Assembly (NCBI RefSeq): GCF_000400465.1
Contig: NW_008806277.1
Coordinates: 90,001 to 122,000 of the forward strand
Direction: 5' to 3'
Length of the DNA stretch: 32,000 nt
From: Wallemia ichthyophaga EXF-994
Taxonomy: Eukaryota > Fungi > Basidiomycota
In this document: positions 9,584-32,000 of the stretch, one piece after another
Position numbering within the stretch: the first letter of the stretch is position 1
How the letters are laid out: the number at the start of each line of letters is the position of its first letter
Position numbers and translations under genes: made by a program
Notes under the pieces: generated by a model
Told to the model about the DNA's origin: nothing
Databases searched by the model: none
What the model saw: only the letters and a program-made list of their open reading frames with translations

Positions 9584-10046
9584 TCATTGTGTAGTCACCA
9601 CGGAATCCTTCTCAACAAACTCCACAGGCGACTCGCCCTCAAGTGTGCTAACCAGGTTTTGTGGAATGTGGCCAGTGAATGTCTTCATAATCCCATTGCT
9701 GGTGTAAGGGTGTGTCACTTTGCCGCCTAGAGTATATTAAAAATGACGTCATCAGACATGCACTACACACCAGTAGACTCAACCTGGCTGGCGTACTTGT
9801 GGATCTCGTCGTCGGTGGCTGTCTCCTTGAACATGACGATGTATCTGTCGTGTGATTCTGGGTTGTGTGAGTGAGTATGTGGCGTGGCGTATGCGGCCAG
9901 CACCCACCTGCGTTCATTCTGCTTATCTGCTCAGTCGATGGGATTACGATGTTGCGTGTCTGTGTGCTGTGTGTGTATGTGTACAATCCTCCCAGCGTCA
10001 AAGTAATTGTTACGAAAGCAACAGCTATTTTAGTCGAGAGGCGCAT
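9584..10046 (-). CDS. Peptidase inhibitor I9 (POIA1/PBI2-like); exons 10046 (or 9917)-9908, 9857-9771, 9726-9584
   Basis: Spliced product ...MNAESHDRYIVMFKETATDDEIHKYASQVESTGGKVTHPY...FTG...VEFVEKDSVVTTQ*; 50- and 44-nt GT-AG introns. Confidence 0.85.
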
Positions 10047-10104
10047 GACTGCTATTGATAACGAAAGGTACGCGTGAAATGAAATTACTTATTTCGAATG
10101 TATA

Positions 10105-10125
10105 GTGTATCGTGTATCGTGTATC
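10105..10125. repeat. (GTGTATC)3 tandem repeat between the GMC stop and the I9 start
   Basis: Three perfect 7-mers read directly. Confidence 0.85.
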
Positions 10126-10149
10126 GGGAATAATACACAGTAAACACTC

Positions 10150-11979
<1,830 letters not shown>

Positions 11980-12033: not shown

Positions 12034-14362
12034 CTACTGCCGAATCTTATCCATCCATTTCATAAATATGTTCTTTTTGCCTGCTTTAGCTGTGCCTGTC
12101 CGTGATGATGGTCTTGCTGCTGCCGTCATAGGCGAGCTGCCAATGTCGTTATCGAGTGCGTTTGCGTTTGTATTTGCATTTGCATTTGCATTCGCGTTCG
12201 TGTTTACGTTTACGTTCGGCGACGGTATCCTCTTCCCCCGTCCACTCTTCTCCCGCTCATACTTTTCCCGCTCGAGCTGCTCTCTCTCTCTACGCACACT
12301 AGCTGCATTCAGCCTCGCGCCAGCGGGCGCAGGCGGCGGCGATATTTGTCCGTTACGCGGGTTCGCGTTGGCTGTGCCGTGACTGACGCTCCTCTCTTTC
12401 ATGAACGTCTCTGACATTCCGCTGGCGAATTGGCCGCTGCTGTGTGGCGGTGTAGGCTTGGTGTCTGCTACACTCTCTGCTGCACTCAGAGACCGCCTCC
12501 TGCTTCGTTTTTCCTCTTGTTTCTGCTTCTGCTGTCTCCCGCCGTTGGGTATCTCGGGTGGTATATCGTGCTCTCCCTTACTTCCACTCGCGTTTCCACT
12601 CCCACTCATGCTTTTCAGCCTCACTTTCCCAAACCAGCTGCTGTCTTTGTCGTATGTGCTCGCAGCATGGCTGGTAGATGGCCTCGCTGTAGATTTGTCC
12701 TTCTTGGCAAAAAGCGATCCTGAGGATATGGGTCGAGATGCTGAGCCTGCGTTGGAATTGTTACTCTTGCTTTTGATGGCGCTACTGTTTCCATTGCCAC
12801 TACCACTCCCCATCCCCACACTGCTTACCCTGTCTGCCCCCAGTCCAAAAGGTATATTGAGTGACTTGCGAGAGCTTTGAGATCCAGTGCGTTTCAGATC
12901 ACCACTTTTATTCTTATCTTTGTCCTTTTCTTTGTCTTTGTCATCCTTACTCTCCTTCTTTTCCTCACTCGCAGTCATAACCTGGTTGAGCTTCGACGTG
13001 CTGTTCACTTTAGAAGCACTGGTGAGTGGGGTGAGGGTGGGTGATGGTGGTGCACTAAAAGACCCTTTCTTCTTCAAGTACGACGCCTTGTTTGACTTGT
13101 CCTTGTCCTCCTCTTCCTCCACCAGCGGCACCTGAGGCGAAGGCTTCTCCGCGAGACCAACACTCCCTCTATCAAGATGGACAGTCTCGTAGAAGAAGAC
13201 ATACCCCTCTCCCGCCGGATCGTTTCCGAAGAATTTACTCAGTTCGTGCTCGTCGACAATCGACACCTTATCGTCGTCGAACAGCACCCATCTGTCATAC
13301 GACTTGATGATAGATACGTAATGGCCGTGGTGTGGGCCGCTGTAGGTGCATTAATGATGATTTTGGTAAGCTCGAGTGCAAATATTTACACACCTGCCGA
13401 TATGGATGATGACTGCAAAGAGACTATACATCCTGTCACTGTTTTCAGCACCCTGGCATGTGCTGCTGAGATTGGCAGGCTCGAGAAGGAACGGGAACGC
13501 AACGCGGTACGACAGTTTGATGTAGCGGTTCTGCTCTTCCTGATATTTGAATCGCTTGAGGTGGAGAGCGAGGATGTTTGGGAGCTTCTTGATACGCATC
13601 CTGAATATAGTACAAGGTGTAAGAGGATGGTTTAAACACTCTAATTAAACACTCTTACCATTTTTCAGCTTCCTGCAATCCTCCACAACCATCGCAGAAG
13701 AATTTGTTCTTCTGGCAGAGCATCTCGCGCGTGCTGAAGTTGCTCAGACACTCTGTGACATTGGAGTCTTCCTCGACGTTGATGCTGAGATCGAGAAACG
13801 ACTCATCGCGGTGGGTAATGTTCTCGCAGGTCATGCATTTCGTTTCATTTGTGAGCGTTCCTTCGAAGAGAGAATGTACGAGCGTGTGGGGGGATTTGGT
13901 GAGGCGCGTAAGATCCTCAGCGACTCTATTGAGAAGATAGTTGAGGAACTCATGCGCATCCTGGTGCGTCGTCGATCTGAACAGCTCATTTTCAATTCGA
14001 AGCCTATCGACAAATGATTTGGTGTGAGATACGCCAGTACGCCTAGGCTGCCTGGATATTTCATGGAAAAGATTACGGAGCACTGTGTACATGCTCCTGT
14101 CTACATCCGACGGCAGCCCCAAAATCAATTCTCTTAACGGGCGACAGAAGTAGAGAGATTGGAGAACTGAATTGCAGTAGCACGTATTGCCCAGATTATC
14201 CATCCCGTAGAATCTCTCGAGGTTTCTGTCTGCAACCTGCTCTGCACTCAGTCGCCGCTCTGTTTTCGGGTCCTTTACCAGCGCTGCATCGAGCTCCCTG
14301 CTGCTGATCCCGCTTTGAAGATCCTTGCTGGCTATTCCAAGCCTCTTGAACAACGAGGTCAT
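12034..14362 (-). CDS. Ubiquitin-specific protease, USP12/46 (CreB/Ubp9/13)-like, with a long low-complexity C-tail; exons 14362-13659, 13600-13394, 13339-12034
   Basis: Cys box [23 protein letters not shown], His box [18 protein letters not shown]; 58- and 54-nt introns. Confidence 0.92.
12155..12215 (-). repeat. Degenerate hexamer repeat encoding an Asn-Ala/Asn-Val dipeptide run ([20 protein letters not shown])
   Basis: TTTGCA/TTTGCG/TTTACG units on the plus strand. Confidence 0.8.
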
Positions 14363-14419
14363 CCTGTGCGTCGTTTGCCGTGGCTGCTGTGATCTGAGAG
14401 AGATGAATTAAATAAACAA

Positions 14420-16753
14420 TTAAAATTCATCAGAATCATTTACATCGACATATTTATCTGCCAGCTCATCGTCATCGCTGCTCACGTCTATCATCAGATT
14501 CTTTCGTGGCCGCTGTGTTGGCTTTGTGTTTGAGTTTGTGTTTCTATCAAGCAGCCCAACCGCGACGCGTGGCTGATATATGTGATCTATCTTGCGTCTG
14601 AATTTCTTATAGTTCGGCATATCTCTATCACCTCGAATTTCCTTCTTTTCCTTCTTTTCCCCAGGCTCGTCACGCCTCCGCAGCGGAATGAGTTTCATCG
14701 GAATAATGCAATCGCCGAGAGCGCGCTGAAATCCACTCCCATCCAGCTGCAGATCATCATCAAAGTCATCTCCTTCCCTACCCTTCTTTCCAGCCTCTTT
14801 TCCAACCACTTTTTCAACTCCACCGGACTTGCTCCCAGGCACACTCTCAGGCACCCGCGAAGCCTGTCTCTGCGCAGCCGCTAATACCTCCTGCTCAGCT
14901 ATGCGCGCATGTTGTGCAGCTACCTTCGCATTCCGCTCTTCCAATAGCGTTTTCTTTCTCCTCATCATATGCTCATTGAGAAAATCGTGTTTTTGGGGCG
15001 CTGCCATCTGCTCCTCTACTCTCTCACGCGCCGTCTTGCGTTTCTGAATTATTTGCGGTGTCGGGGGTGGTATGTGCGATTGCAGCTGCGACAGCAATTG
15101 CGTCGGTGCGGGGGAAGACACATGTGGTGCCGTTGGCTGAGGTGCTGGGAAAGGCTCTTCATCGGAGTCGTCGATGTTTATTGTCTGCATTCGACGCGTG
15201 TTTGCTCGTCTGCGCAGGGTGCTTTGTTGTTGATGGGGCTGATAGGGTTGCTGGGGTTGCTTTGTTGGAGATGATTCCTCTGCTTTCTCTTCTGGCTGCT
15301 GCAATTGCGATGTCTCTTCGTGTTGTTTCTGTTGTTGTTGCTGTTGCGCGTTCGCACTTGTATGCACATCATCATCATCAGAATCATCAATGTTACGGGC
15401 CAATGCGCGTCTCGCGCCTGCTCGTTTACCAAGTTGTAATGTTGTATTTTTCCCTGGCTGCTGCGGTTGTCGCAATTGCACTGTTTCTGCTTTCTCCTGA
15501 GCAGGTGGTGCAGCTGACGTGCTATTTTCACCATCATCGTCTAGGTCATTAGAATGCACTCTCGCAGCACCGCTTCTCTTAATCAACTTTCTCTGTGGTG
15601 CTTTCGGTGCCTCAGCTTCCTCTATCCCATCCAGTGCTTTGCGCTTCCTGCTTTGGGAGGGCTCTTGAGAAGGTGCTCTAGAAGAAGAGGATGGTTGTGA
15701 TTCATGCCGAGGTGCATCTACTCTCTCTTCACATGGCACAGCCTCTAAACAATCCACATCAATCTCCATAATAGCTCTATTCACCGAGGAGCATTCCATA
15801 TGCTGAATACCAACTTGTTGAGCAGCTTGCGATATCGCATTCGACCATGCTACACCCTCGCCCAACAACCTGTCGCTTACATCTGTTGGGAGAATAATCT
15901 GGGTGTTTTTCGTACATGTGCGCTCAATTGCTGATGCGACATTGTCCGCTTTGATGGATGTGTTGATTGGTTTAACACTTGCACCGCAATGCGTTAGTAT
16001 GTCGATATAAGCAGATGATAGGAGATCAACAATCACGTAGAAGGTGTGTCCGCTAAATAACCTCAATCTACTCTCAGAAATGAGCCAGAAAGCATCAGAT
16101 TGAATTTTTTCATTGGAAACTGCTGATGGCAGATGATCTGAAGTGACAGTGGGGAGTATAGAATCGATATTGTCTGACAATATAGACTGGTAGACGCTTT
16201 CAAGGTAGCCTCTGTTGACGATAGGTTTGAGGGAGGTTAGAGCAGCGAGTACTTTAGTATTGAGAGATCTTTCTGGATGGACTAGGTAGTCATAGGAGGA
16301 CTTCCAATGACCCCTACCGAATTTTAAACCCTTTTCCGCGTAACAGAGTGTCTCAGAGTTGAATGAAGATTTTGAAGTGAATAGGGAGGAGACATTGAAA
16401 TGAATTGGGCGCCAAATCACAGTCATAGCGATAGCTTGATTGGCAAGGTATATAATGTCACCGTGTTCAATCTCAGTTGAACTGTTTTCGAGCATCGTCG
16501 GTGGGCTGTCTGGTTTGACTACTTTAGCTTTCTTGTTTGCGTGTATTGTGAGAGGATATTTTGCTTGTATATCATCCCTCTTTGTCACGTCAACATCACC
16601 GGCTATCACGTCACAGTGATTAGCCCTACTAATCAACTTATGGTTGAATTTGATTTCTGAGGATTTCCTTCCGATCGAAGTTGTCTTTGAGGGTTTCAAG
16701 AAAAAGAAGCTGTGAGTGTTTTCGTTGGTGTTGTAGCAGTCTAGTGTGTACAT
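14420..16753 (-). CDS. NBS1: Nibrin / Nbs1 (MRN complex)
   Basis: N-terminal FHA (SIGRK...ISRANH), BRCT-like region, C-terminal Mre11-binding NYKKFRRK motif, acidic C-terminus; single ORF of 777 aa. Confidence 0.85.
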   Translation of the reverse strand: MYTLDCYNTNENTHSFFFLKPSKTTSIGRKSSEIKFNHKLISRANHCDVIAGDVDVTKRDDIQAKYPLTIHANKKAKVVKPDSPPTMLENSSTEIEHGDIIYLANQAIAMTVIWRPIHFNVSSLFTSKSSFNSETLCYAEKGLKFGRGHWKSSYDYLVHPERSLNTKVLAALTSLKPIVNRGYLESVYQSILSDNIDSILPTVTSDHLPSAVSNEKIQSDAFWLISESRLRLFSGHTFYVIVDLLSSAYIDILTHCGASVKPINTSIKADNVASAIERTCTKNTQIILPTDVSDRLLGEGVAWSNAISQAAQQVGIQHMECSSVNRAIMEIDVDCLEAVPCEERVDAPRHESQPSSSSRAPSQEPSQSRKRKALDGIEEAEAPKAPQRKLIKRSGAARVHSNDLDDDGENSTSAAPPAQEKAETVQLRQPQQPGKNTTLQLGKRAGARRALARNIDDSDDDDVHTSANAQQQQQQKQHEETSQLQQPEEKAEESSPTKQPQQPYQPHQQQSTLRRRANTRRMQTINIDDSDEEPFPAPQPTAPHVSSPAPTQLLSQLQSHIPPPTPQIIQKRKTARERVEEQMAAPQKHDFLNEHMMRRKKTLLEERNAKVAAQHARIAEQEVLAAAQRQASRVPESVPGSKSGGVEKVVGKEAGKKGREGDDFDDDLQLDGSGFQRALGDCIIPMKLIPLRRRDEPGEKKEKKEIRGDRDMPNYKKFRRKIDHIYQPRVAVGLLDRNTNSNTKPTQRPRKNLMIDVSSDDDELADKYVDVNDSDEF

Positions 16754-16779
16754 TGAAGTGGAGTGGTAAGGAGGATAGT

Positions 16780-19279
<2,500 letters not shown>

Positions 19280-19360
19280 GATTTCAACGATCTATGTAAA
19301 GAAAGATATATAGGTATACAGATATGCATAATGACGATAACGATGATAATGATGACGCTC

Positions 19361-20209
19361 TCACACACCACTCTTGCCCGGCCTCGCTACCAAAGCTGCA
19401 GAAGCCTGATTGGTGGGAAAGATGAGGGAGCTGGCAGTTTGGACGTGCGGAGGACGGCTAGTGACCCAGATGATATCTTCTGCTACATCGTGTGGCGTGA
19501 GAGGGTCTAGATCCTTATAGACATTGCTAGCCTTATCAGTATCTCCGCGGAAACGCACCTCGCTGAATTCCGTCTCGACCAAACCAGGCTGAATTTCCGA
19601 GACGCGGATGGGAGTGCTGATGAGTTCTTTCATGAGAGAGTTAGTGAAAGCTCTAGCAGCGTGCTTAGTGCTGCAGTAGATGCTGCCGTTAGGATAAGGT
19701 TCGATGCCGGCGATAGAGCCGATAGTGACGACATGACCGTTGTTACGCTGTTTGAAGTGGTTGACGAGTATTTGGGTGAGTTTGATAAGACCGGTGACGT
19801 TGGTGGAGTACATCAGGGCTACGTCGTCGTCGGCGATATCTCCCACAGCTTCGATGCCCTTGACTAGACCGGCGTTGTTGATGAGAATGTCGATGTGGGG
19901 GAAAGTGGATCGCTGGAGAATAGTGGAGATGTCTTCGTTGCTGGTCATATCTAAAGAAATTGCTTGGTGTGCGCCGTGGGGATTGAGTTGGCGTGCTTGA
20001 GCGACGATATCTTGCAGCCTGTCTAATCTACGAGCAGCGAGGAGGACATTTGCACCGCATTGGGCGTATAATAGGGCAGTGGACTTGCCGATGCCGCTGG
20101 AGGCACCAGTGACGAGGACATTCTTCCCTTCTGCGGGGGAAGTTAGTGGGGAATCAGTGAGAATAAGTATAAACATACGTAATCTATGAGTTGATAGAAT
20201 TTGGGACAT
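19361..20209 (-). CDS. Classical NADP-dependent SDR, YdfG/YMR226C-like; exons 20209-20179, 20130-19361
   Basis: TGASSGIG, AARR, NNAG, YCSTK, PGLVETEFS; 48-nt GTATGT...CAG intron gives MSQILSTHRLQGKNV. Confidence 0.9.
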   Translation of the reverse strand: MSQILSTHRLRMFILILTDSPLTSPAEGKNVLVTGASSGIGKSTALLYAQCGANVLLAARRLDRLQDIVAQARQLNPHGAHQAISLDMTSNEDISTILQRSTFPHIDILINNAGLVKGIEAVGDIADDDVALMYSTNVTGLIKLTQILVNHFKQRNNGHVVTIGSIAGIEPYPNGSIYCSTKHAARAFTNSLMKELISTPIRVSEIQPGLVETEFSEVRFRGDTDKASNVYKDLDPLTPHDVAEDIIWVTSRPPHVQTASSLIFPTNQASAALVARPGKSGV

Positions 20210-20273
20210 TTTAATTGACTATAGATGATGGACGTTCGGGTTCAAGAGGGTTTCTCTGTTCGCTACAGCCATT

Positions 20274-21317
20274 ATGTAAATTGGGTTTAATTGAAATGGC
20301 AGCAACTGATTGAATCAATCACAGGACACATGTACTCCCAGCTAATCTGTTAAAGGTGATTAGATAATCTTGTGTACGCTGGTTACTCACTCACAGTTGC
20401 AGCTATTTGCACCACGGCCACCACTCTCTTATGCTAAACCACTGGAGCGTGATCCAACGCGTGGAAAGAGGAATACGATTACAGGGATTGCCGGTTTGAT
20501 GGATTCGATTAGGTACGAGAATGAGAAAGTTACAGACGATCAGGATGAGAAGGCACAGCAGAATGGAATCAATGACAACGATAGGAAATCCCAACTTCAG
20601 GCTGAAAAAGCTACAAAGAGAAAGGACACCTTCAACAGCGCACTCAGTCAGTACAACCCACAATCAGACAGTGAAGCTATCGGTGATCCCTTCAAAACGC
20701 TCTTCATTGCACGCTTAACCGCTGAAACCAATGAATCCGATTTACGTAAGGAATTTGAAGTCTATGGCCCTGTGGAAAGAGTTCGTATTGTTCGTCATAA
20801 AGACACGGGAAACAGCCGCCGTTATGCCTTCATTATATTCGAAAAGGAACGCGATATGAAAGCAGCGTATAAGGATGCTGAGGGTTTGAAAATCAATGGC
20901 AATAGAATCCTCGTTGACGTCGAACGCGGTCGTACCGTAAAGAATTGGAAACCTAGGCGTTTAGGCGGTGGTTTGGGTGGTAAACCTAAAGTGGTTATCC
21001 CCGACTTACCTCCGCCACGAGGACCTCGAGGCCCTCCTGGTGGTTCTAGAGGTGGTTTTGGTCCTCCAGGTCCACGAAGAAGCGATGGCGGTGGTAGATT
21101 TGGTCCTCCAGGTGGTGGTCCTGGTCGCTTTAGCCGCGACCGCGACCGTGATCGTGATGGTCCTAGATTCGGTGGTGATCGCCCAATGCGTCACTGGGGT
21201 GGCCCTCCACGCGATAGAGATAGAGGTGATAGAGACGGCCCCAGAAGATCTTTTGGCGGTTTCAAGAGGGAATTTGACGGTGGAGACGATCGGGATGCCA
21301 AGCGTTATAGATATTAG
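20274..21317 (+). CDS. SNP1: U1 snRNP 70 kDa protein (Snp1 ortholog); exons 20274-20275, 20325-20355, 20403-21317
   Basis: Spliced N-terminus MTHVLPANLLKLFAPRPPL; RRM GDPFKTLFIARL...RRYAFIIFE; DVERGRTVKNWKPRRLGGGLG; RG/RD-rich tail. Confidence 0.93.
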
Positions 21318-21393
21318 CTGGCTGGGTCATAATATGTGGTACTTTTGTACAAACGAATTTAATTATTGATTCACTAGTCTCTTCTTAACCGTG

Positions 21394-22951
21394 ATGACCT
21401 CATCACCGAATTCGAACGACTCGAAGAAACGCAAAATGAAATCCTTCGATGAGCTATTCGCTGATGCAGCACCGGAGAAAGCCAAGGGTACGCGACAGAC
21501 GACGCCTCACGCGACGGATGTGCGATGGCTGCGAGTGGGAGGAGGGGGAGCCGGGGGAGCTAACCAAGGCGATGATCAATCAGGCTATTGGTGGCCAGTG
21601 CGAAGTTTAGACGAAGGCGCAGTGGAAGTGTATGGCGACGACGGGCATGGATTCCGCCGGCGGGTCAAAGCAGACAAGGAGTCGCTGGCCACATTCAAGC
21701 GCGAGGGCGTAGTGCGATATACCCCACAGACCTTCTACACGCACGAAACTCCGCCTCCCTGTCTCGTCGACGCTTTTCAAACAGCCGTCAAAAGCGCCAG
21801 CATCGACGACGAGGATAGCAAGGATGACCTGCCTGATGTGGACGTAGCGTTGTATGTCTCAACCCCATCGGCTAGCCAGGTTGGGCAGGTTACCCAAGTG
21901 GACTCGGACTCGTCCCCGGTGAGCACACAAGGGCAGACTGAGACGCATTCAGGGCATTCAGAGCACTTGAATCACTCCCAGCACCTGATTCAACCCGATC
22001 GAGACATCAATATAGCGGAGAAGGAAGGTGTCTTGTCGCGCTACTACAAGTCATCCAAGACACACTGGCCAGCACGCGTCATTGGGTTTGACAGCGGACT
22101 CTACTTGCTCGAATTCAACGACGCGACTGTGCGCAAACTGCCGCGCGCATGTTTCTTTACGTGCGCCGAAAAAGGTTTTCGGGAGTGCGAGCTGGGGATG
22201 CTGGAGAAGGTGGGCGGGGACCAGAAGAAGAAGAAGCGAGGGGACAAGAGCAGGTATGAGTATGGGCGTGAGGGCGGGAATAGGAGTGAGCTCACCTGCT
22301 CACACACTCGCACTCAGCCTCGCATGCCCCCCACAGAGGTGTTTGGGGAGCTGGACATGGCGACACAAGTGCAGCTGTGTCTGCCCATCATCGACCGCAT
22401 AATCCACGAGCAGTACACGCCCGCTCTGGAGAAGCACAAGCAGTTTGTCAGAGGCGGTCTCTCCCGCAAGGCCGTTGGAAAGCAGGTGTGTTATGGGGAA
22501 TTCAGCGGCTGTCGCGACGAGATTGTGGAAATAATACGCGAGTATTTGAAGGTGTGTGCAGCGTGCTGGCTAGCTAGCTAGTTAGGCATACACACACACG
22601 AATACGCTAACACCCCGCTCACACCAGCCAGGCGAGGAGGGAGAGGAAAGTGCGCAGGAAAAGGCCTACGAGAAGCTCACGCCGCCGGAACGCGTTGCTT
22701 ATATGCTCGATGTACTTTTCCCGGAAGTGCTCATCCAGATTGTCATCCACTCGGAAGGACTGGATGGAGAGAGCGCGAGCGGATACAGGCGGGCGTGCGA
22801 AATACTCAAAGCGGAGTCTGCGGACCGCGACTGGATCGATAGGATCTACGCTCAGAGACAGTTCCACGAGCCGTCCACACCCACGCAGCAGCCCGAGCAG
22901 CAGCTGTACCACTCGTCAGGCAGGCCTGTGCGGAAGAAGACAGGGCGATAG
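21394..22951 (+). CDS. Uncharacterised protein with two PWWP/Tudor-like motifs and a helical C-terminal domain; confident intron 22552-22627, splicing at 22210-22317 unresolved
   Basis: GYWWPV and SKTHWPARVIGFDSGLYLLEFND motifs; a 76-nt phase-0 intron with GCTAAC branch joins two ORFs. Confidence 0.7.
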
Positions 22952-23038
22952 TGGTTGTGGCTTAATCGGATTTGATTTTTGATTTTCGCGTACCACTTAC
23001 AGGCTACAGCCCAGCCATCCCGCTTGTACTGCTACACT

Positions 23039-23917
23039 ATGACGTTGATCGACTTTCCTAAGTGCGAGTGCGAGGGCGAGATTGAGAAGGCTACACACAC
23101 ACAAGCCACATCACGCAAATTTCCGCTCAGTCTGCCTTTCGATCTGCGTATGTTTGCGGTGACTTGGCGCCCGCGGCCGGCGACCGCCCCCACATACACA
23201 GCCACCGTCAACGAGAAGCGGATCGCACTGGGCGTAGAGCTGCTCGAGAAGGCTATCGAGGCTGACAGGAGGCGCGACGATGAGCTCTGCTGTACGTATG
23301 CGATTTACAGCGCTCTATCGCTGCAGCTGCCCGATAAGACGCGTTCTGAAATTTATAACAGATGAGGCATATTTCCACGCGGTGGACCTAATATTCAGTG
23401 CAATCAACGAGCGCAAGGAGATGGACTCAAGGCGCATGGAGCACCTCGAGAGCATGATCAATTGCCATTTGCTCAAGCTGGGACTGACGCCAGTGAGCTG
23501 CACAAAAGACCGCGGCGGCGGTTGGCGGGAAGGAGTAATTGAGACGAGCACCGCGATAGCCGTGGCTGCCAAGAAAAGCAAAGTGGGGAAGCGTACTGCT
23601 GTTGGTTTGCTACTCACGCTGCTCAGCTCCACCAATACGCGTTGGGCGGGTTAATCAGCATCGTCAACGCACTCAGACAACTCAATGAGAGATTTCAAAT
23701 ATCTTGGCGTCTCGTCAACGCACTCGAACGCGCAGTCGCGCTCTTTGTCCGCCTTGATAGCCACTTGGGTCTCCACCAATCAGCTTGCGAGATTGGCTGG
23801 ACGGCGTGGGAGGCCACAGTGAAAGCTGCGATAGCTTATGCTCAAGCGGGTGCGTCGACGGCAACATCTCCAGCGTCATCTTCGGTGTCATCTCCATCTC
23901 GAGTGAAATACCAGTAG
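23039..23917 (+). CDS. Uncharacterised protein with a MIT-like helical bundle; introns 23292-23361 and 23583-23626, possibly 23062-23130
   Basis: IALGVELLEKAIEAD...Y..AVDL pattern resembles MIT helix 1-2; two GT-AG introns join three ORFs in frame. Confidence 0.6.
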
Positions 23918-24019
23918 TCTTTAGATGAATTGATATAATTTCTGTATTTAATAAAGCATTTTAAGTTCAATAAACTATAAACACATCTTGGTAGTGTACA
24001 ACGACGATCAGCGCTAGAG

Positions 24020-27000
24020 ATGAACAAGCCACGCGAGTCAAAAGTGGTCGATATTGACAGCAGCGACGATGACGCGGCGGGCGATGACAGCAACAAGCGC
24101 AAGGATGGCGTAATTGATCTTACCAACGACGACGACGATGATGTTGTTATCAAGAGCACGCCAAAGCCACAGCCACCACAGCAGCCAATATCATTCGATC
24201 CGCTGTCTCCATCTGCACCGGTGTGTATTGGTGAAATAACATGCACTGCACTCGTGATGATTCCTTCGAATTATATCCAAACGACTCCCGAGGTTTGGAA
24301 GGACGTCCGCTTGGCTTATGTGCCTCAACTCAATCATTCTACTCAGAATCCTCCAATTGAAACTATACGCGTATACCCTCCTGCTCATGTTCTCGGACAG
24401 ACTCCTGCACTTAGCCTCGGTGCTGGTCAGATGCGCATCCAGGACAGCTTTGCCGTTGTTGATCGCCGCACTGCGGGCGTTTTGGGCCCTTTGATGCTTC
24501 AGCGTTGTGTACGAATTGAAGGCGTCGTTAAAACAAAGTCAGGAAGCGTGAGTTGAGTTGCTTATCTAATAGTCCACTCTCACCCATCTACAAACAGCCA
24601 ATGATGCTCCCTATGAAACTCCTTCTATTCACCAGACGTGACTTAATGGAGAAAATTGCACACGTTGTCCTCCACGCAGGCATTGCCATCGAAGAGCCAG
24701 AAAGATATAGACCAGACAAACATTGCAACGCTTGGTATGAGTCGCCTGCTATTGTCAAGACCTTTAGTAAACATGGTTTTCCTTCTACTAATATACCCTC
24801 CTATGGCCCACTCACTAATGACTCGTCCTCCTCCCTCAATCCTTACTCTTATCGGCCTCAATACACTGGCCACGCAAAGACAACCGAAGTCAATCGCTCT
24901 CAGCAAGCTAACGAAATGCTTGGCAAAATATCCGTCGATGAACTCCCTGAAACTCTCGCTTCATCTAGAATAGCGACTACTCTCTACCCTCATCAGAAAC
25001 AGGCGCTGACTTTTTTACTTGAGTGCGAACGTGATCCTCGTAGATCCACAAATGAATCTGACAAATTCTCCTTCTGGAAGCAAAGTAAAGATAAAAGGAA
25101 ATTCCAGCATATTATCACACACAACTACCTCAACCAGGAACCTGCTGGATGTCGCGGTGCTATTTTAGCAGACGATATGGGACTCGGTAAGACTATCTCA
25201 GTTGTCGCGTTGATTGCGTCCACGTTCGAGTCTGCAAATGATTATGCATTGGCTGGTCCGAGTAAATCAGACACAGAAAAAAAACCAAAGAGGCAGGAAA
25301 TGAAAGCTCCAGATGCTTCCCATTTCAGTAGCAAATTCGCTATACCTGGCATGCCTCAATCTAACTCTGGTATTACCGACTCATTTCGAAAAGAAAATGA
25401 CGACCAACTCGAAGGTGCTTCTGGAAAATCACGTCGATTGCGCAAAGAGAGGCTTCAAATTAGGAGTAAAGCGACTGTAATTGTCAGTCCCTTATCTACG
25501 CTAAGTAATTGGGAGGAACAGTTCAGTGATCACATGACAACTAAGCCGCATTTCTATCGTCATGAGGAAAGACCGCCAAGAAAACGCAAAGACGATGGAC
25601 TGAATATTTATATATATCATGGCAATAATCGCAAGAAAGAGGTGTCATTTCTGATGCAATTTGATGTCATTCTCACCGCCTTCTCCACCGTCGCTACTGA
25701 GTTCAGCAAACAGGATACTGCCATCAAGAAACTTCATCTTGCGCAAGAGAAATGGGATGAGATGTTGGAGAATGGTACGGCTTTCGCGAATACCAATGGA
25801 GTTAGCGACGATGATGTATCCTTTGTGTCTGACAGTGCAAGCGCATCCGGAGCCTCCTCATCGAAACCTACCAAGTTGCCACCATCATCATCATCATCAT
25901 CGACGTCCAAGCCAAAGGGTAAAGGCAAGCGTAAGAAGAAGGGTGAGGATGATCTTGAGGGTCTCTGTCCAGAGATGCTAGCAGAATTGGAGCAGAATGC
26001 CATCAACTATACTTCTCCACTTCAGCAAATCGAGTGGTTCAGAATTGTGCTCGACGAAGCCCACTATATCAAAGATCCATCAACCATGATGTCAAAGGCA
26101 GCTTCTGAACTAGCAGCTGAGAGAAGGTTGTGTTTGACGGGTACGCCTATCCAGAACAAAATTGAAGACCTTTATGCTCTGTTGAGGTTCTTGCATCTCG
26201 AACCATTTGATGAGCGCGAGACGTGGAACACGTTTATTGGCACACCCATTAAGCAGCAGCTCAATGTAGGATTTGCGAGGATCCAGATAATTATGAAGCA
26301 TATAACTATGCGTCGTACCAAGGAAATGAAGAATAAGGATGGTACCCCGATTGTCTCCCTCCCTGATCGGTCTGATGAGTTGCGTTCGTTGGAATTCAAC
26401 CCCCGAGAGAGGGCTATATATGAAAATCAACATGGTAAATCTAAGGACAAGTATCTAGATTTACGTGATGCTGATGGTTTGTCACGTGGTGGTTTTATTA
26501 GTATTTTGCAGGTATGTTGGAGTATGAGTGGTTGGTGATGCAAATTAACACTTTAAAGGAATTACTTCGTTTGAGGATGATATGCGACCATTACTGTCTA
26601 TGTCCAGATGCTGTGAACGCGTTTGCTGAATCACCACTCGCACAAGCGCAAGCTATCTTTCAGGTAATGCGCGACTCAGAAACTGCAAATTGTTTGGAAT
26701 GCTACTACGACTTTGTCCAAGCGCAGCTCCCTGGTGCGCCCAAGGAAGAAGAGGACGAGAAGCCGCTGTATGATGAAAAAGATAGGGATTTCAAAAAGCC
26801 GAAGAAGGAAGCAGGAGGAGGAGGAGGAGCACCAAGTAATGCCGTGGCACTTCCAGTTCTCAATCTCCAGTGTAACCATCTGTTATGCAGCAACTGCATA
26901 CAAAAACACATTGGCGTATGGCCCGAATTCGAGCCATTTAATTGTCCAGATTGCAAGGAGCTGGTCAGCGATCGTGAAAAGATTATCCAAATCAGTAACT

Positions 27001-27766
27001 TCAACGACACCTTTGCGTCTGTCGACAACGATCTCGCCAAGTTTGAAGACGAGCTGCCGACTTCGAAGCGGAAGAAAAGGATCGAAAGACCGGAGGAGTT
27101 TTCGACCAAGATAGAAGCACTGCTTCACGATCTCGCTGAAATATCAACAACGAATCCTCACTCACCCAACTACGACACACTCAATTTCGATGTCGACATC
27201 AAAGCTACACCGAACAAAACGATCGTATTCAGTCAGTGGACGTCTATGCTGGATTTGATTGAATATGGATTGAAGGAGTGTCAAATTGGATACGGTAGAC
27301 TCGATGGAACTATGCAGCGTGATCAGCGTGCTTTCGCTCTTGAAAGACTCAAATTTGATCCCAAGTGCGAAGTGCTCCTTATATCACTGCGTGCAGGTGG
27401 TGTAGGATTGAATCTGGTGAGTTGTGTGGTACATAGTGTACAACCCTCTCACACACCTGGCAGACTACAGCAAATAGAGTATACATGATGGACAGCTGGT
27501 GGAACGTCGCAGTGGAGAACCAAGCAGTCGACCGTGTGTGTCGTATTGGTCAAAAACGCCCCGTGCAGGTCGTCCGCTATATCATACAGAACACTATCGA
27601 GGAGCGCATTCTGCAGATACAAGAACGCAAAACAGAGCTCTTCAAGGGCGTCCTCGGATCTGGACGCCAGAGGTCCAAGGAAGAGGAGAGGAAGGAGATG
27701 CTCGAGAATATCGCTATCATGTTTGGAGAGTCGCCCGAGTCTGCGCATGTGAGGAAAAACATGTAG
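24020..27766 (+). CDS. SNF2-family helicase with embedded C3HC4 RING, Rad5/HLTF-like; exons 24020-24547, 24598-26511, 26559-27416, 27464-27766
   Basis: LYPHQKQAL, GAILADDMGLGKT, VLDEAH, LTGTPIQN, RING C..C...C.H..C..C...C..C, IVFSQW, QAVDRVCRIGQKRPV; 50-, 47- and 47-nt introns. Confidence 0.93.
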
Positions 27767-28524
27767 ATGGTTGCATCGCTGTAATCTTTTCAACTCATTC
27801 ACTCATCTTTGTGGCTGGGCTGGGCTTGTCTCAGCTTTCTCAGTCGACTTTTTTTTTTAATCTCTTTTATCTTTCATTCCCCCTTACTCAGCAAACACAC
27901 AAGCATGTATCACTATGTCTTCTCAATTTTATTTATTTGTATTTAGTTTATTTGGTTGTAGGCTGTATCCATTCTATCCATTCTATCTAATCATTTGAAA
28001 CCTTTGTGAAACATTTATGAAACATATTGTCAAGTGCGATCATGGAGTGCATGGATAGACAGCTAGGTCAATCCAATGCAGGAAAGCTAAGCATGCTCCT
28101 ATGTATTCTCATTGTACGTACTTCGCTGAGGAAGGCACAGCGCTGTCTTGGAAGAAGGCTTGGCTATACCCAAATGTAAAAAACCCTAAAAATCAAACAC
28201 CTGCGTCATATGCCTGCATGATCACTTAAAATAGGCATTAGGGGGACATTTTGCTACAAGGCTCCCAACATCCTTTCACGGCTCCTCTCAGTAAATCGGC
28301 ATTGTTCTTCATCTTTAGTTATACCAGAACAGCACATATATCTTTTTTTCTCTTAAGCGGAGCATTTGTTGGTTTAAATGTTAAGAGTTAGTTAAATTGA
28401 CATTCTCAAACAATGATCAGAATGCCTCAAATTAATGTAAAGGTAGATTATATACAATACGCTGCCATAAAATTACTATGAGTGTCAGTATAATATGATT
28501 ACGTGCGCTGAATTTTGAACAAGA

Positions 28525-30269
28525 TTACATGAAGAGAACAACTTTCCCGCTGCCATTACCGCCTGCGATGCTCAAATCGTCGAGTCCAGTGAAGGGTTTC
28601 GCCGATACGACAGCCGGTACAGCGGTGATATTCTCCGTATCAACTAAATCAGCAGACGGTGCTCTATCGCCCATTGTCCACATCTCCAACGACCTCTTCA
28701 TAGAAGGAGTGATGAAAGAGGTGGGGACACCAGTCCATGGCGCTGGATTAATCCACTGCATTCTAAAAACCGACAACCATCTCCCCGTTTCGTTGTTGTG
28801 TTTGATCGAATTGACAACGTTGAGTTTATCGTCGAACACCTTAACTGTGTTGTCGAAAGACGTTGACAAAATGTTGGATCCCGTTGGAGAGTAATAAGCC
28901 GATGTGACAGCTTTCCCGTGGATGGTTCTATGCAACATGCCAATTTCCTCGCGATTGTCATAGTACGGTAGATCGTCTTCATCTTCTGTAATAGGTTCGA
29001 GTGTATTGCAATGTTTCTTAACCATTCGCATGTCGAATATACGTACAGCGTGGTCGTTGGAGGCTACACATACCTGCTGCTCGTTGGAGGGGTTGATAGA
29101 GACGGATCCGAGTTTGTTCTTGGACAACACATACCGCACACCCCTATCGCGGGATTCACGCATATCTTTTAGCGACAGTCCGCCTCCGTTGTCAGCTGCG
29201 TGCAGCAGCGAGGGCGTTTGATGGGGTATGTCGAGATGTGTGATTAGCCTATTCGTCTCCTGTTCGTATCCGTCGTTGCTACGGAAGAGTTGGGTCGATA
29301 GCCCACTCTCGAAGTCTAATTGACGGATTGTGCAGTCGTAACTGGTCGTGAATGCCTTCCTACTATCGCTAGCATCAAATCGTATGCAGGAAATAGGTGA
29401 TCCAATCACGTGTGGCTGCAAACGCCATATCTGCGCCGTGTCCTTGTCGGCGTCATATTTTAGTATGCCAAGTTGACCGTACTTGTCACCAGCAAACACC
29501 AGATCACTTTCTTTGTCAGGATGGTACTGCATGCTGTGAATGCGATTTGAGGTAACTTTTTGAATCGTTTTGAATACCAAACTATTGGCTCTTTCTTTGT
29601 ACTTGTGCACTGAATCGCTGCTGTTCGTATCTTTCTCATCTTCGACAGAATGTATGGGACGTGGAATGGCTGGTCGTGATGCCAAATAGCCTGAAAGCTC
29701 CTTCGCTATTAGCTCATCATTCTCGTCATCATCTTCTTCGTCATCCTCATCCTCATCATCCTCCTTCTTGGCTTTCTCCTCCTTTTTCACACTCTCGCCG
29801 CACTTCTTGCTGTGTATGTACTCTACCGGATCGCGCTTAAGTAGCTCGAGTATGGGCATATCATTCCTACGCGTTTCGTGCTCAATTCTCCGCTTTTCAT
29901 CTTTGCGTTGTGCTTCGCGTTCTAGTTCCGTCTCTAGCTGCTCGCGGCTCGCTTTCTTGTCTTCTTCGGTCGTAGGAACGCGTCTGCTCGAACGTCTGGG
30001 TGGGTCTGCAGCAACTGCTTTGTCTGCATCTTCCTCCCTCTTCACCCTCTTCTTGGCTGGTTGCTGCTTCTGCTGTTTCTGCTGCCTGGGTTTCGCATCA
30101 TCACTGTCGTGCGATCGCTTCCCAAACACCTCCTTCGACGCCTCGCCTAGTCCAAGTTGCTCGAGAAGACGGTTGTTCTCCTCGATGTTCTTCAGTCGCT
30201 GTCGCTCACTAGCGTGTATTAGCGGATTGCAGTGAGCGCAGAACCACAAGCGTACTACTCTGAACCCAT
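28525..30269 (-). CDS. CMR1: WD40 protein Cmr1/WDR76; exons 30269-30256, 30208-28525
   Basis: Spliced start MGSEYERQRLKNIEENNRLL; HP...LVFAGDKYGQLG, SAYYSPTG, HNNETGRW, GGNGSGKV; 47-nt intron. Confidence 0.9.
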
Positions 30270-30484
30270 TTTGAGCACTTGTTTTGATGTTCGGTGTCGG
30301 TGATTAAGTTTACTGGGTCAGTGGCGATTACATTTGATTGCATCCGATAGCGACTGATAGCAGCTTCCAAATAGACTTTACCTGAGCTAGCTAGTTGATG
30401 ACTGTTTTACGCGTCACTTAACTTATCACTCGCTAATAATTAACAATTACAATATATACCACAATAAAACGCAACAGCACGCGT

Positions 30485-31650
30485 AAATCTATCCTAGTAA
30501 AAATACAACAAACACAATTCAACCCATTTGCAACCGCAAATCTAAAGCCATCAGAGTCAGTGCAAGGTTTAGCAGCAGTTAGGCAAGGTCTAGTATGAGC
30601 GTCCGGGAATACTTAAGAGGCTTTCGGGAACTTCTCTGCACCGAGTAGACCGAGTTCAAGGGATTTGATGCGCGTATCGTTTATGTAGAACAAAGGCGTA
30701 TACCCGTCTTAGGTAGAGGGTTTAGGGAAATTGGCGAGACCGATGGCATTTTAGAGGGCTTATCGGACTCATATGCCTCCTCAAAGGTTAGAGTGTGATC
30801 ATACAATTCTACGATACTACCTATGGATGATGCTATGATTTGTTACCCGACGGTGAATAATGAGCATTCAGTCACCGATGATTGTTCTGATAGCCATAAA
30901 ACAATCCTTCAACGTCAAATACATCTTCCGTGGGAGTTTTATTTGAATTTCGACTATCACTCTTCTGCAGCCCACTCACATCGAAAACTCGAAGTGTTTT
31001 ATCTGCACTTGCCAGAAAAATCTCAAACTGGTTGGCTGGATTGATCGAGACGCTATTTAGTGCTTTAATGGATTAGCTAAATTTTTCAACGGTTTCATCG
31101 TTATTCCGAATGCGCGCTTCAGTGATTGCCAACCTTCCTTGTGAGTCAGACATATAGATGATGTTTGGAGAGTTGTAATGTGCATCTATACCCAACACAT
31201 CAACTGAATCACCTTTAAAAGTCTTGTCGAGCAGACTTGGAGGATCGAAGAGCATTTGGAACACTTTACTCGACACACCAGTCTCAAAATCCAACAACAC
31301 TCGAACCGTTGAATCGGCGCAGACTGTATAAAGTTTACGGTAACAATGAGGATCTAGGAGGTTGTTGTTGATTGAATGACTTCTAACGTGTGGCTGTAGT
31401 CTCCATACTTCAGAATGATTTGCGTGTTTTGTGATACCAAGTTGGCCCTGCTTATCTCAAGTAAAGATAAGCTCAGATGATCGATCTGGGTGGTAAAGCA
31501 AAACAATTGGACTACTAGTCACAGCTTTAGTTCTGCAATAAGGTCTGCGTTTTTCTTTTTGGATCGCTGCTGAGTGTTCAAAACGACAGGAGAAATGCGG
31601 AATCTTGATCGTCTTTGGATCTCTTGAACAAGTTTGTTTTAGGTCATTTT
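30485..31650 (-). pseudogene. Diverged tandem CMR1/WDR76 paralog disrupted by in-frame stops and frameshifts (boundaries approximate)
   Basis: Manual translation aligns colinearly to the neighbouring CMR1 over most of the WD40 region; stops at 31457-31459, 31073-31075 and 30681-30683; frame changes near 30830-30900. Confidence 0.85.
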
Positions 31651-32000
31651 TGGAACAGAACGGAGTTATTAGTGTAGATCAGCAGAGTTTTGCGCGTCCA
31701 ACTGATCCTGATAACACTCGTATTCTGCAGCATCGTCCCAAACATCGTCATAAACCGAGAAAAATACTGCGTCAAGTACGTCCAAACGCCTAGCAAACTT
31801 CCAAAGGTGAACTTTTTTGCGTTACTCTTCAGAATCAACAGAGTAAAGAGTTGGATCTTATTAATAAGAGTATGAATTGAGTGCTCAGAATAATAAGAGT
31901 TATTATCAAGGCTCCAGCGCTCTTCCAGCATTTCACCAAGCCCAGTTTTATCTGGTCTATAAAGTTCGGCATATCTTCTATAGGACTGATTCTTTGCAAT
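31644..32000 (-). other. Coding-like fragment entering from the right edge, unidentified
   Basis: Frame open from 32000 to 31644 (119 codons); an overlapping second frame reads RRLDVLDAVFFSVYDDVWDDAAEYECYQDQLD...* ending at 31669. Confidence 0.35.

Follow-up and report, generated by a model that had tools for sequence, protein, structure and literature searches.

The genome of Wallemia ichthyophaga is very compact, with 9.6 Mb and 1.67% repeats (PMC3849046), and a gene-free gap of ~1.9 kb between its Med9 and CMR1 genes raises the question of what occupies this interval. We address it in a stretch of 32,000 nucleotides from strain EXF-994 (contig NW_008806277.1, positions 90,001 to 122,000 of the forward strand), hereafter the window, which over the interval and CMR1 is base-for-base the EXF-994 reference locus L018 (KE007227.1). 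In the orientation of the NCBI locus L001, the gene order is RPL19e (-), Med9 (+), the gap, CMR1 (+), and an SNF2 helicase (-), with the Med9 stop at L001 position 8093, ~177 bp past the window end at position 32000. CMR1 (S. cerevisiae Ydl156w)/WDR76 is a DNA-damage- and chromatin-associated WD40 protein whose gene is normally single-copy. We find that the gap is filled by a second, broken copy arranged in tandem with the intact one, here termed psi-CMR1, which explains a gene-free interval that is unusually long for one of the most compact basidiomycete genomes.

The intact gene is represented by an ORF at 28528-30249 (-) that is 99% identical to the deposited 'hypothetical protein E3P84_01765 [Wallemia ichthyophaga]' (P0001), and its orthologs in W. 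hederae (64% identity) and W. mellicola (60%) are both named DNA damage-binding protein CMR1. A tblastn search of the window with this ORF, a check suggested by the initial annotation of the stretch, recovered psi-CMR1 as a minus-strand match at 31573-30842 (31% identity over 260 aa, E=2e-26) with three in-frame stops inside it, along with two more colinear pieces in other frames (30878-30699 and 30696-30523); the remaining alignments elsewhere in the window were weak (E of 0.009 or worse), and many of them involved the charged N-terminal region. In a frameshift-aware protein-to-DNA alignment the homology runs from 31540 to 30523 on the minus strand and is colinear with the entire CMR1 WD40 domain, covering 341 of its 349 residues with 107 identities in 326 aligned positions (32.8%). 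The last aligned codon (30523) lies 254 bp upstream of the CMR1 ATG (30269), both being on the minus strand. The motifs YHPD, DKxGQLG, WRLQPH, LDFExG, SVSINP, ASxD..R.FD, and YSPxG are present, whereas KHNNETGRW is replaced by YESDKPSKM.

Approximately 630 bp separate the Med9 stop from the start of the WD40 homology, roughly the length that the CMR1 N-terminal region would take up. Within these ~630 bp (the part beyond the window being read from L001), every score obtained with a profile from seven CMR1 N-termini was negative, and neither a counterpart of the CMR1 N-terminal third nor its conserved motif (S)E(Y)ExQRLxNIxxN..LL..LGL was found. No start codon is recognizable for psi-CMR1, which leaves room for a partial duplication confined to the WD40 part. 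The peptide RKTVENIERG was considered as a CMR1 N-terminal motif and rejected, as it belongs to the last Med9 exon, which has a conserved counterpart in W. mellicola and whose end coincides with the stop annotated for Med9. The sole intron of CMR1 falls in the N-terminal part that is unrecognizable in psi-CMR1, and at the 3' end of psi-CMR1 we noticed no poly-A tract. At that end the paralog has not conserved its ancestral stop position: beyond the final aligned residues (...VANG), ~30 more codons stay open until a stop is reached near 30433 (window 30433-30522, -).

No gene is called at psi-CMR1 in the NCBI annotations that we examined, and in our literature search we met no previous report of a CMR1 pseudogene in Wallemia. 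The duplicate screen in the genome paper used a threshold of at least 50% of the maximal Exonerate score (PMC3849046); the identity of psi-CMR1 to CMR1 is only ~31-33%. Scans of the window for Rfam families and tRNAs returned nothing. In the Logan ORF collections, two 'proteins' of 73-75 aa (P0018, P0050) correspond to the stretch of psi-CMR1 between two of its stops (window 31073-31300, -) and are spurious gene calls.

Table 1. Features of the CMR1 locus in the window (window coordinates)
Feature	Position	Strand	Description
CMR1/WDR76, intact gene	28525..30269	-	564-565 aa; one ~50-nt intron after the first few codons; parent or sister copy
Spacer between psi-CMR1 and the CMR1 ATG	30270..30522	-	from the L001 gene model 10001-11745 mapped onto the window
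psi-CMR1, recognizable remnant	30523..31540	-	CMR1 residues ~226-566 of the 574-aa ORF (whole WD40 propeller)
psi-CMR1, segment A	30841..31540	-	codon starts 31759-3n; motifs YHPD, DKQGQLGI, WRLQPHV, LDFETG, SVSINP, ASADKTLRVFD, HYSPSGN
psi-CMR1, segment B	30697..30840	-	codon starts 31760-3n; reads IIASSIGSIVELYD...SVSPISLNPLPKTGI; motif KHNNETGRW decayed
psi-CMR1, segment C	30523..30696	-	codon starts 31758-3n; reads PLFYINDTRIKSLE...AAKPCTDSDGFRFAVANG
Stretch from the WD40 part toward Med9	31541..32000	-	size would fit the CMR1 N-terminal region; similarity to it gone
In-frame TGA	31457..31459	-	replaces the conserved Gly of (F/A)GDKxGQLG (AGDKYGQLG in CMR1); fixed, 13/13 assemblies
In-frame TAA	31073..31075	-	aligned to Leu of RYVLSKNKLGSVSINP; fixed in all assemblies
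In-frame TGA	30872..30874	-	aligned to Val of KAVTSAYYSP; fixed in all assemblies
In-frame TAA	30613..30615	-	aligned to Leu of SADLVD; fixed in all assemblies
Frameshift 1	30836..30842 (~30840)	-	equivalent to one base lost, right after HYSPSGN; no indel polymorphism
Frameshift 2	30694..30698	-	between ...NPLPKTGI and PLFYIND...; no indel polymorphism
Segregating 1-bp deletion	30950	-	absent from the window; present in L013, L017, L019, L020; additional disabling lesion, still polymorphic

Psi-CMR1 is disabled by four in-frame stops and two frameshifts (Table 1), none of which is an assembly error. We compared 13 W. ichthyophaga assemblies, namely the window, the NCBI loci L001, L002, and L013-L020 (including the EXF-994 reference L018), and the long Logan contigs L008 and L009. 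These represent eight haplotypes with mosaic patterns, each carrying all four stops and both frameshifts, and three shorter, partial Logan contigs (L010-L012) are free of indels and of SNPs affecting a stop. Since the six lesions recur in every assembly, assembly error, which the initial annotation had named as a possible source of the lesions, is excluded. That annotation had quoted seven colinear blocks, all of which are present as written in the three-frame translation and in the frameshift-aware alignment, and had rightly placed a TGA at the conserved glycine (31459-31457) and a TAA at 31073 (31075-31073, in the homologous frame). The further TAA that it gave at 30681 does exist as a codon (30683-30681), but in the frame that is left at frameshift 2, there being no stop in the homologous frame at this point; likewise, its 'several 1-bp frame changes near 30830-30900' come down to one frameshift at ~30840 and a second one at ~30694-30698. 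Its list thus had two stops right and missed two in-frame ones, the TGA at 30874-30872 and the TAA at 30615-30613.

Psi-CMR1 now evolves neutrally. Across the 13 assemblies, 38 sites segregate in the 1751 bp of the psi-CMR1 region as against 14 in the 1745 bp of CMR1. In the conceptual frames of psi-CMR1 the ratio of non-synonymous to synonymous changes is 21:7, i.e., 75% non-synonymous where random mutation would be expected to yield 77%, as opposed to 5:9 in CMR1 (Fisher test between the two, p=0.02). With its ORF broken and purifying selection not seen, psi-CMR1 is not a functional CMR1/WDR76 gene. The window is identical to L001 over its last 1840 bp (30161-32000), and ~0.8% of sites differ over the preceding 11.6 kb (18525-30160); the other strains carry mosaic haplotypes over 18525-32000, a pattern that fits recombination blocks. 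W. ichthyophaga has been described as recombining, with an LD decay distance of ~1.3 kb (PMC6738226).

The divergence from CMR1 nevertheless points to a long history before this decay. At four-fold degenerate sites in codons for identical amino acids, 6 of 31 are identical between psi-CMR1 and CMR1 (19%), no more than chance would give, and the corresponding identities between the CMR1 genes of W. ichthyophaga and W. hederae (0.30) or W. mellicola (0.34) show psi-CMR1 to be equally saturated. Because these synonymous sites are saturated, the duplication must be old, as the initial annotation had surmised. For the same reason the classical dN/dS comparison of the paralogs that it had suggested was set aside, and stop counts, indel phase, column conservation, and four-fold expectations were used in its place.

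These measures bear most directly on the alternative that survives best, namely that the WD40-coding part alone was copied, that the copy was never functional, and that all of its divergence is neutral decay. This would accord with the upstream stretch, which offers neither N-terminal homology nor a start codon nor the conserved ERQRLKNIEENN motif, with the destruction of KHNNETGRW, and with the neutral evolution seen at present. However, of the columns that are invariant in the three Wallemia CMR1s psi-CMR1 retains 42%, a level that a neutral simulation from the CMR1 coding sequence reaches after ~0.43 substitutions per site, and by then 10±3 stops would have arisen, as against the four observed (P(<=4) ~0.02). 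A never-functional copy at that distance implies a total synonymous path of ~0.86 and a predicted four-fold identity of 49%, far from the observed 19% (P=7e-4). The identity is moreover concentrated at columns conserved across the family (56% retention at universally conserved columns vs 37% at other Wallemia-invariant ones, p=0.02), and the indels are ~12 in-frame to 2 frameshifting (P ~1e-4 on the assumption that a third of neutral indels preserve the frame), although these tests of past constraint are individually modest (p ~0.02) or reliant on assumed indel spectra and on gaps from an alignment at 33% identity. The ~630-bp distance to Med9, too, matches the size of a full-length copy. We hence view a copy that was dead from the outset as improbable.

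In combination, the saturated four-fold sites, the shortage of stops, the in-frame bias of the indels, and the concentration of identity at conserved columns argue for an old duplicate that was long under constraint: psi-CMR1 very probably spent much of its history as a fast-evolving gene under selection that preserved its ORF, in agreement with the long functional phase proposed in the initial annotation. The proposal that it 'died recently' stands in one sense only. The four stops correspond to ~0.10-0.15 neutral substitutions per site since inactivation, and two haplotypes compared directly differ by ~0.01, about ten times less than the divergence since inactivation. The death was therefore late relative to the duplication, yet not recent on the population scale, all six lesions being fixed in the eight haplotypes.

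The phylogenetic distribution of the copy invites a second alternative, a recent duplication specific to W. ichthyophaga that was followed by very fast divergence under relaxed or positive selection and then by decay. In W. hederae and W. mellicola Med9 directly adjoins CMR1 with no psi copy between them, and when the psi-CMR1 translation was searched against the loci of these two species and a metagenomic contig (L007) it matched only their CMR1 genes and no psi-CMR1 remnant. A copy seen in W. ichthyophaga only, next to a tight Med9-CMR1 arrangement in the other two species, is what would be expected if no copy had ever intervened there, and no gene losses would then be needed. Against this, the synonymous sites are fully saturated (the 6/31 above), and the states found only in W. 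ichthyophaga are matched by psi-CMR1 no oftener (6) than those found only in W. hederae (5) or W. mellicola (9). The saturation and the absence of an excess of W. ichthyophaga-only states exclude 'recent' as such, making this alternative very unlikely, and are compatible with a duplication early on the W. ichthyophaga branch. Psi-CMR1 shares 5 of the 17 Wallemia-derived states, and in neighbor-joining trees 69% of the replicates place it basal in the clade, a placement that may reflect long-branch attraction given its long branch. These data fit equally well with a duplication that occurred early along the long W. ichthyophaga branch and with an older one that was cleanly removed elsewhere; such clean removal in the other species may have come about, for example, by unequal crossing-over between the copies. 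To locate the duplication boundaries, we also compared the three species (W. ichthyophaga, W. mellicola, and W. hederae) by alignment at the Med9 3' end and the CMR1 5' junction, and obtained no significant similarity. We found no support for the suggestion in the initial annotation that sister strains or species may have intact copies: every strain carries the lesions, the two sister species have no copy, and no intact ortholog was found in the strains, the sister species, or public protein collections, the latter by the exhaustive search of representative proteins described below.

That psi-CMR1 is a live second CMR1 gene, with its stops and frameshifts being sequencing or assembly errors or lying in introns, has nothing but the colinearity itself to commend it and can be put aside as virtually impossible: the same four stops and two frameshifts are seen in 13 independently sequenced assemblies and eight haplotypes, the TGA inside an aligned conserved motif cannot be spliced out, the 21:7 ratio is neutral and a further frameshift segregates, and the examined NCBI annotations have no gene at this position.

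In a phmmer search of the psi-CMR1 translation against 1.84 billion representative proteins, the sole strong full-length match was W. ichthyophaga CMR1 itself (P0001; E=8.5e-32, 127 bits; query 16-358 against protein 220-559). Apart from it and a 73-aa ORF called on psi-CMR1, everything scored at most 57 bits. Of eight such weaker matches that were looked up, six are named CMR1/Cmr1 (Olpidium, Mixia, Ascoidea, Penicillium, Starmerella) or fungal WD40 proteins; the other two are a cyanobacterial NTPase with generic WD40 repeats and an unnamed protein. When the conceptual translation was submitted to a word-indexed protein search, no match came back; this reflects the sensitivity limit of that search, as the exhaustive one succeeded. 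DDB2, the UV-damaged DNA-binding WD40 protein, is absent from those of the weaker phmmer matches that carry names, and no DDB2 chain is found among the PDB sequence matches to psi-CMR1 at E<=1, the best of which are single-repeat matches to Hat2/Mis16/RBBP4 at no more than 21.6 bits; DDB2 does have a WD40 propeller, and among the PDB sequences intact CMR1 reaches it with a weak long-range match of only 28 bits. In neighbor-joining bootstraps psi-CMR1 groups with the Wallemiomycete CMR1s in 97% of the replicates. Its translation is colinear with the whole propeller and keeps most of the family motifs (the glycine of GDKxGQLG having turned into a stop), whereas its broken ORF, its undetectable N-terminal region and motif, and its loss of KHNNETGRW set it apart from the working members. 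By sequence descent, psi-CMR1 can thus be assigned to the CMR1/WDR76 family. The initial annotation's call of a tandem CMR1/WDR76 paralog in the orientation of CMR1 is upheld by the protein search, the named matches, and the PDB search, and the closer affinity to DDB2 that it had raised as a possible objection did not materialize. Although Pfam detects only generic WD40 and propeller signals in psi-CMR1 and CMR1 alike, and so does not separate these families, an origin from another WD40 family (DDB2, for instance) or by acquisition from a distant fungus is scarcely credible in light of the 127 bits to the CMR1 of its own species as against at most 57 for all else, the predominance of CMR1 among the looked-up named matches, the lack of a DDB2 match, the bootstrap grouping, and the tandem position next to CMR1 in the same orientation.

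We therefore consider it highly probable that psi-CMR1 is an unprocessed pseudogene derived from an old tandem duplication of CMR1/WDR76, which was long preserved as an ORF, was then inactivated, and is now decaying. In this scenario, a head-to-tail tandem duplication in the Wallemia lineage would have given rise to the remnant between Med9 and the surviving CMR1. Through much of its history, purifying selection of a relaxed or divergent kind would have kept the extra copy as an ORF, and its inactivation would have preceded by a good margin the coalescence of today's W. ichthyophaga haplotypes, with decay ever since. At present it is likely to have no protein-coding function, and its sole plausible role would be a passive one as the upstream region of CMR1, whose promoter and 5' UTR would now have to be housed in the spacer. 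Overall, the interpretation in the initial annotation was largely right and is supported in part.

Psi-CMR1 resembles other unprocessed tandem-duplicate pseudogenes in adjoining its parent in the same orientation with a colinear coding region, and in having fixed stops and frameshifts, neutral polymorphism, and no annotation. It differs from them in being unusually diverged (33% identity, saturated synonymous sites) and yet having six lesions only, a combination that suggests a long period as a working, fast-evolving paralog, and in sitting in a very compact genome, where long non-coding stretches are unusual. Otherwise, it is an ordinary duplicate pseudogene of a well-known kind. Its recognition adds an unannotated feature to the W. 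ichthyophaga reference annotation, exposes the short ORFs in public collections as spurious, and indicates that a normally single-copy gene was once duplicated and apparently kept twofold in the lineage of W. ichthyophaga. Lying beside a constrained gene, it also provides a local neutral reference against which population-genetic analyses of a recombining halophile can be calibrated. More speculatively, and in our estimate with little likelihood, the Wallemia lineage might have long kept a second, strongly diverged working CMR1/WDR76 that W. ichthyophaga lost in a later streamlining of its genome. This would amount to sub- or neo-functionalization of a normally single-copy genome-stability factor, and some unsampled Wallemiomycete could in that case still have an intact ortholog, from which a specialized WDR76 function might be learned.

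Several observations concern the locus at large. The deposited CMR1 models of W. mellicola (L003 10001-12039, P0003) and W. hederae (L006 10001-12226, P0002) carry an N-terminal extension of ~75-100 aa that is in fact Med9, the two genes having been fused by annotators because they lie so close together; the W. mellicola genes seem to overlap, with the Med9 stop codon sharing bases with the CMR1 ATG (ATGA). The metagenomic contig L007 (ENA ERZ27248811, contig k119_125037, 7195 bp) has the order RPL19e / CMR1 / SNF2 with no psi copy. Its CMR1 is 40% identical overall to that of W. ichthyophaga and 54% identical to that of W. mellicola in the WD40 domain, and the contig probably comes from an unsampled deep Wallemia-like lineage. 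The SNF2 helicase gene downstream of CMR1 (window 24553-27766, +; Pfam SNF2-rel_dom, Helicase_C) is split over several frames, which makes introns likely, and its models are inconsistent within the species: L001 has one protein of 1915 aa (12501-18876), and L002 has two of 1417 and 493 aa (12501-17231 and 17319-18876).
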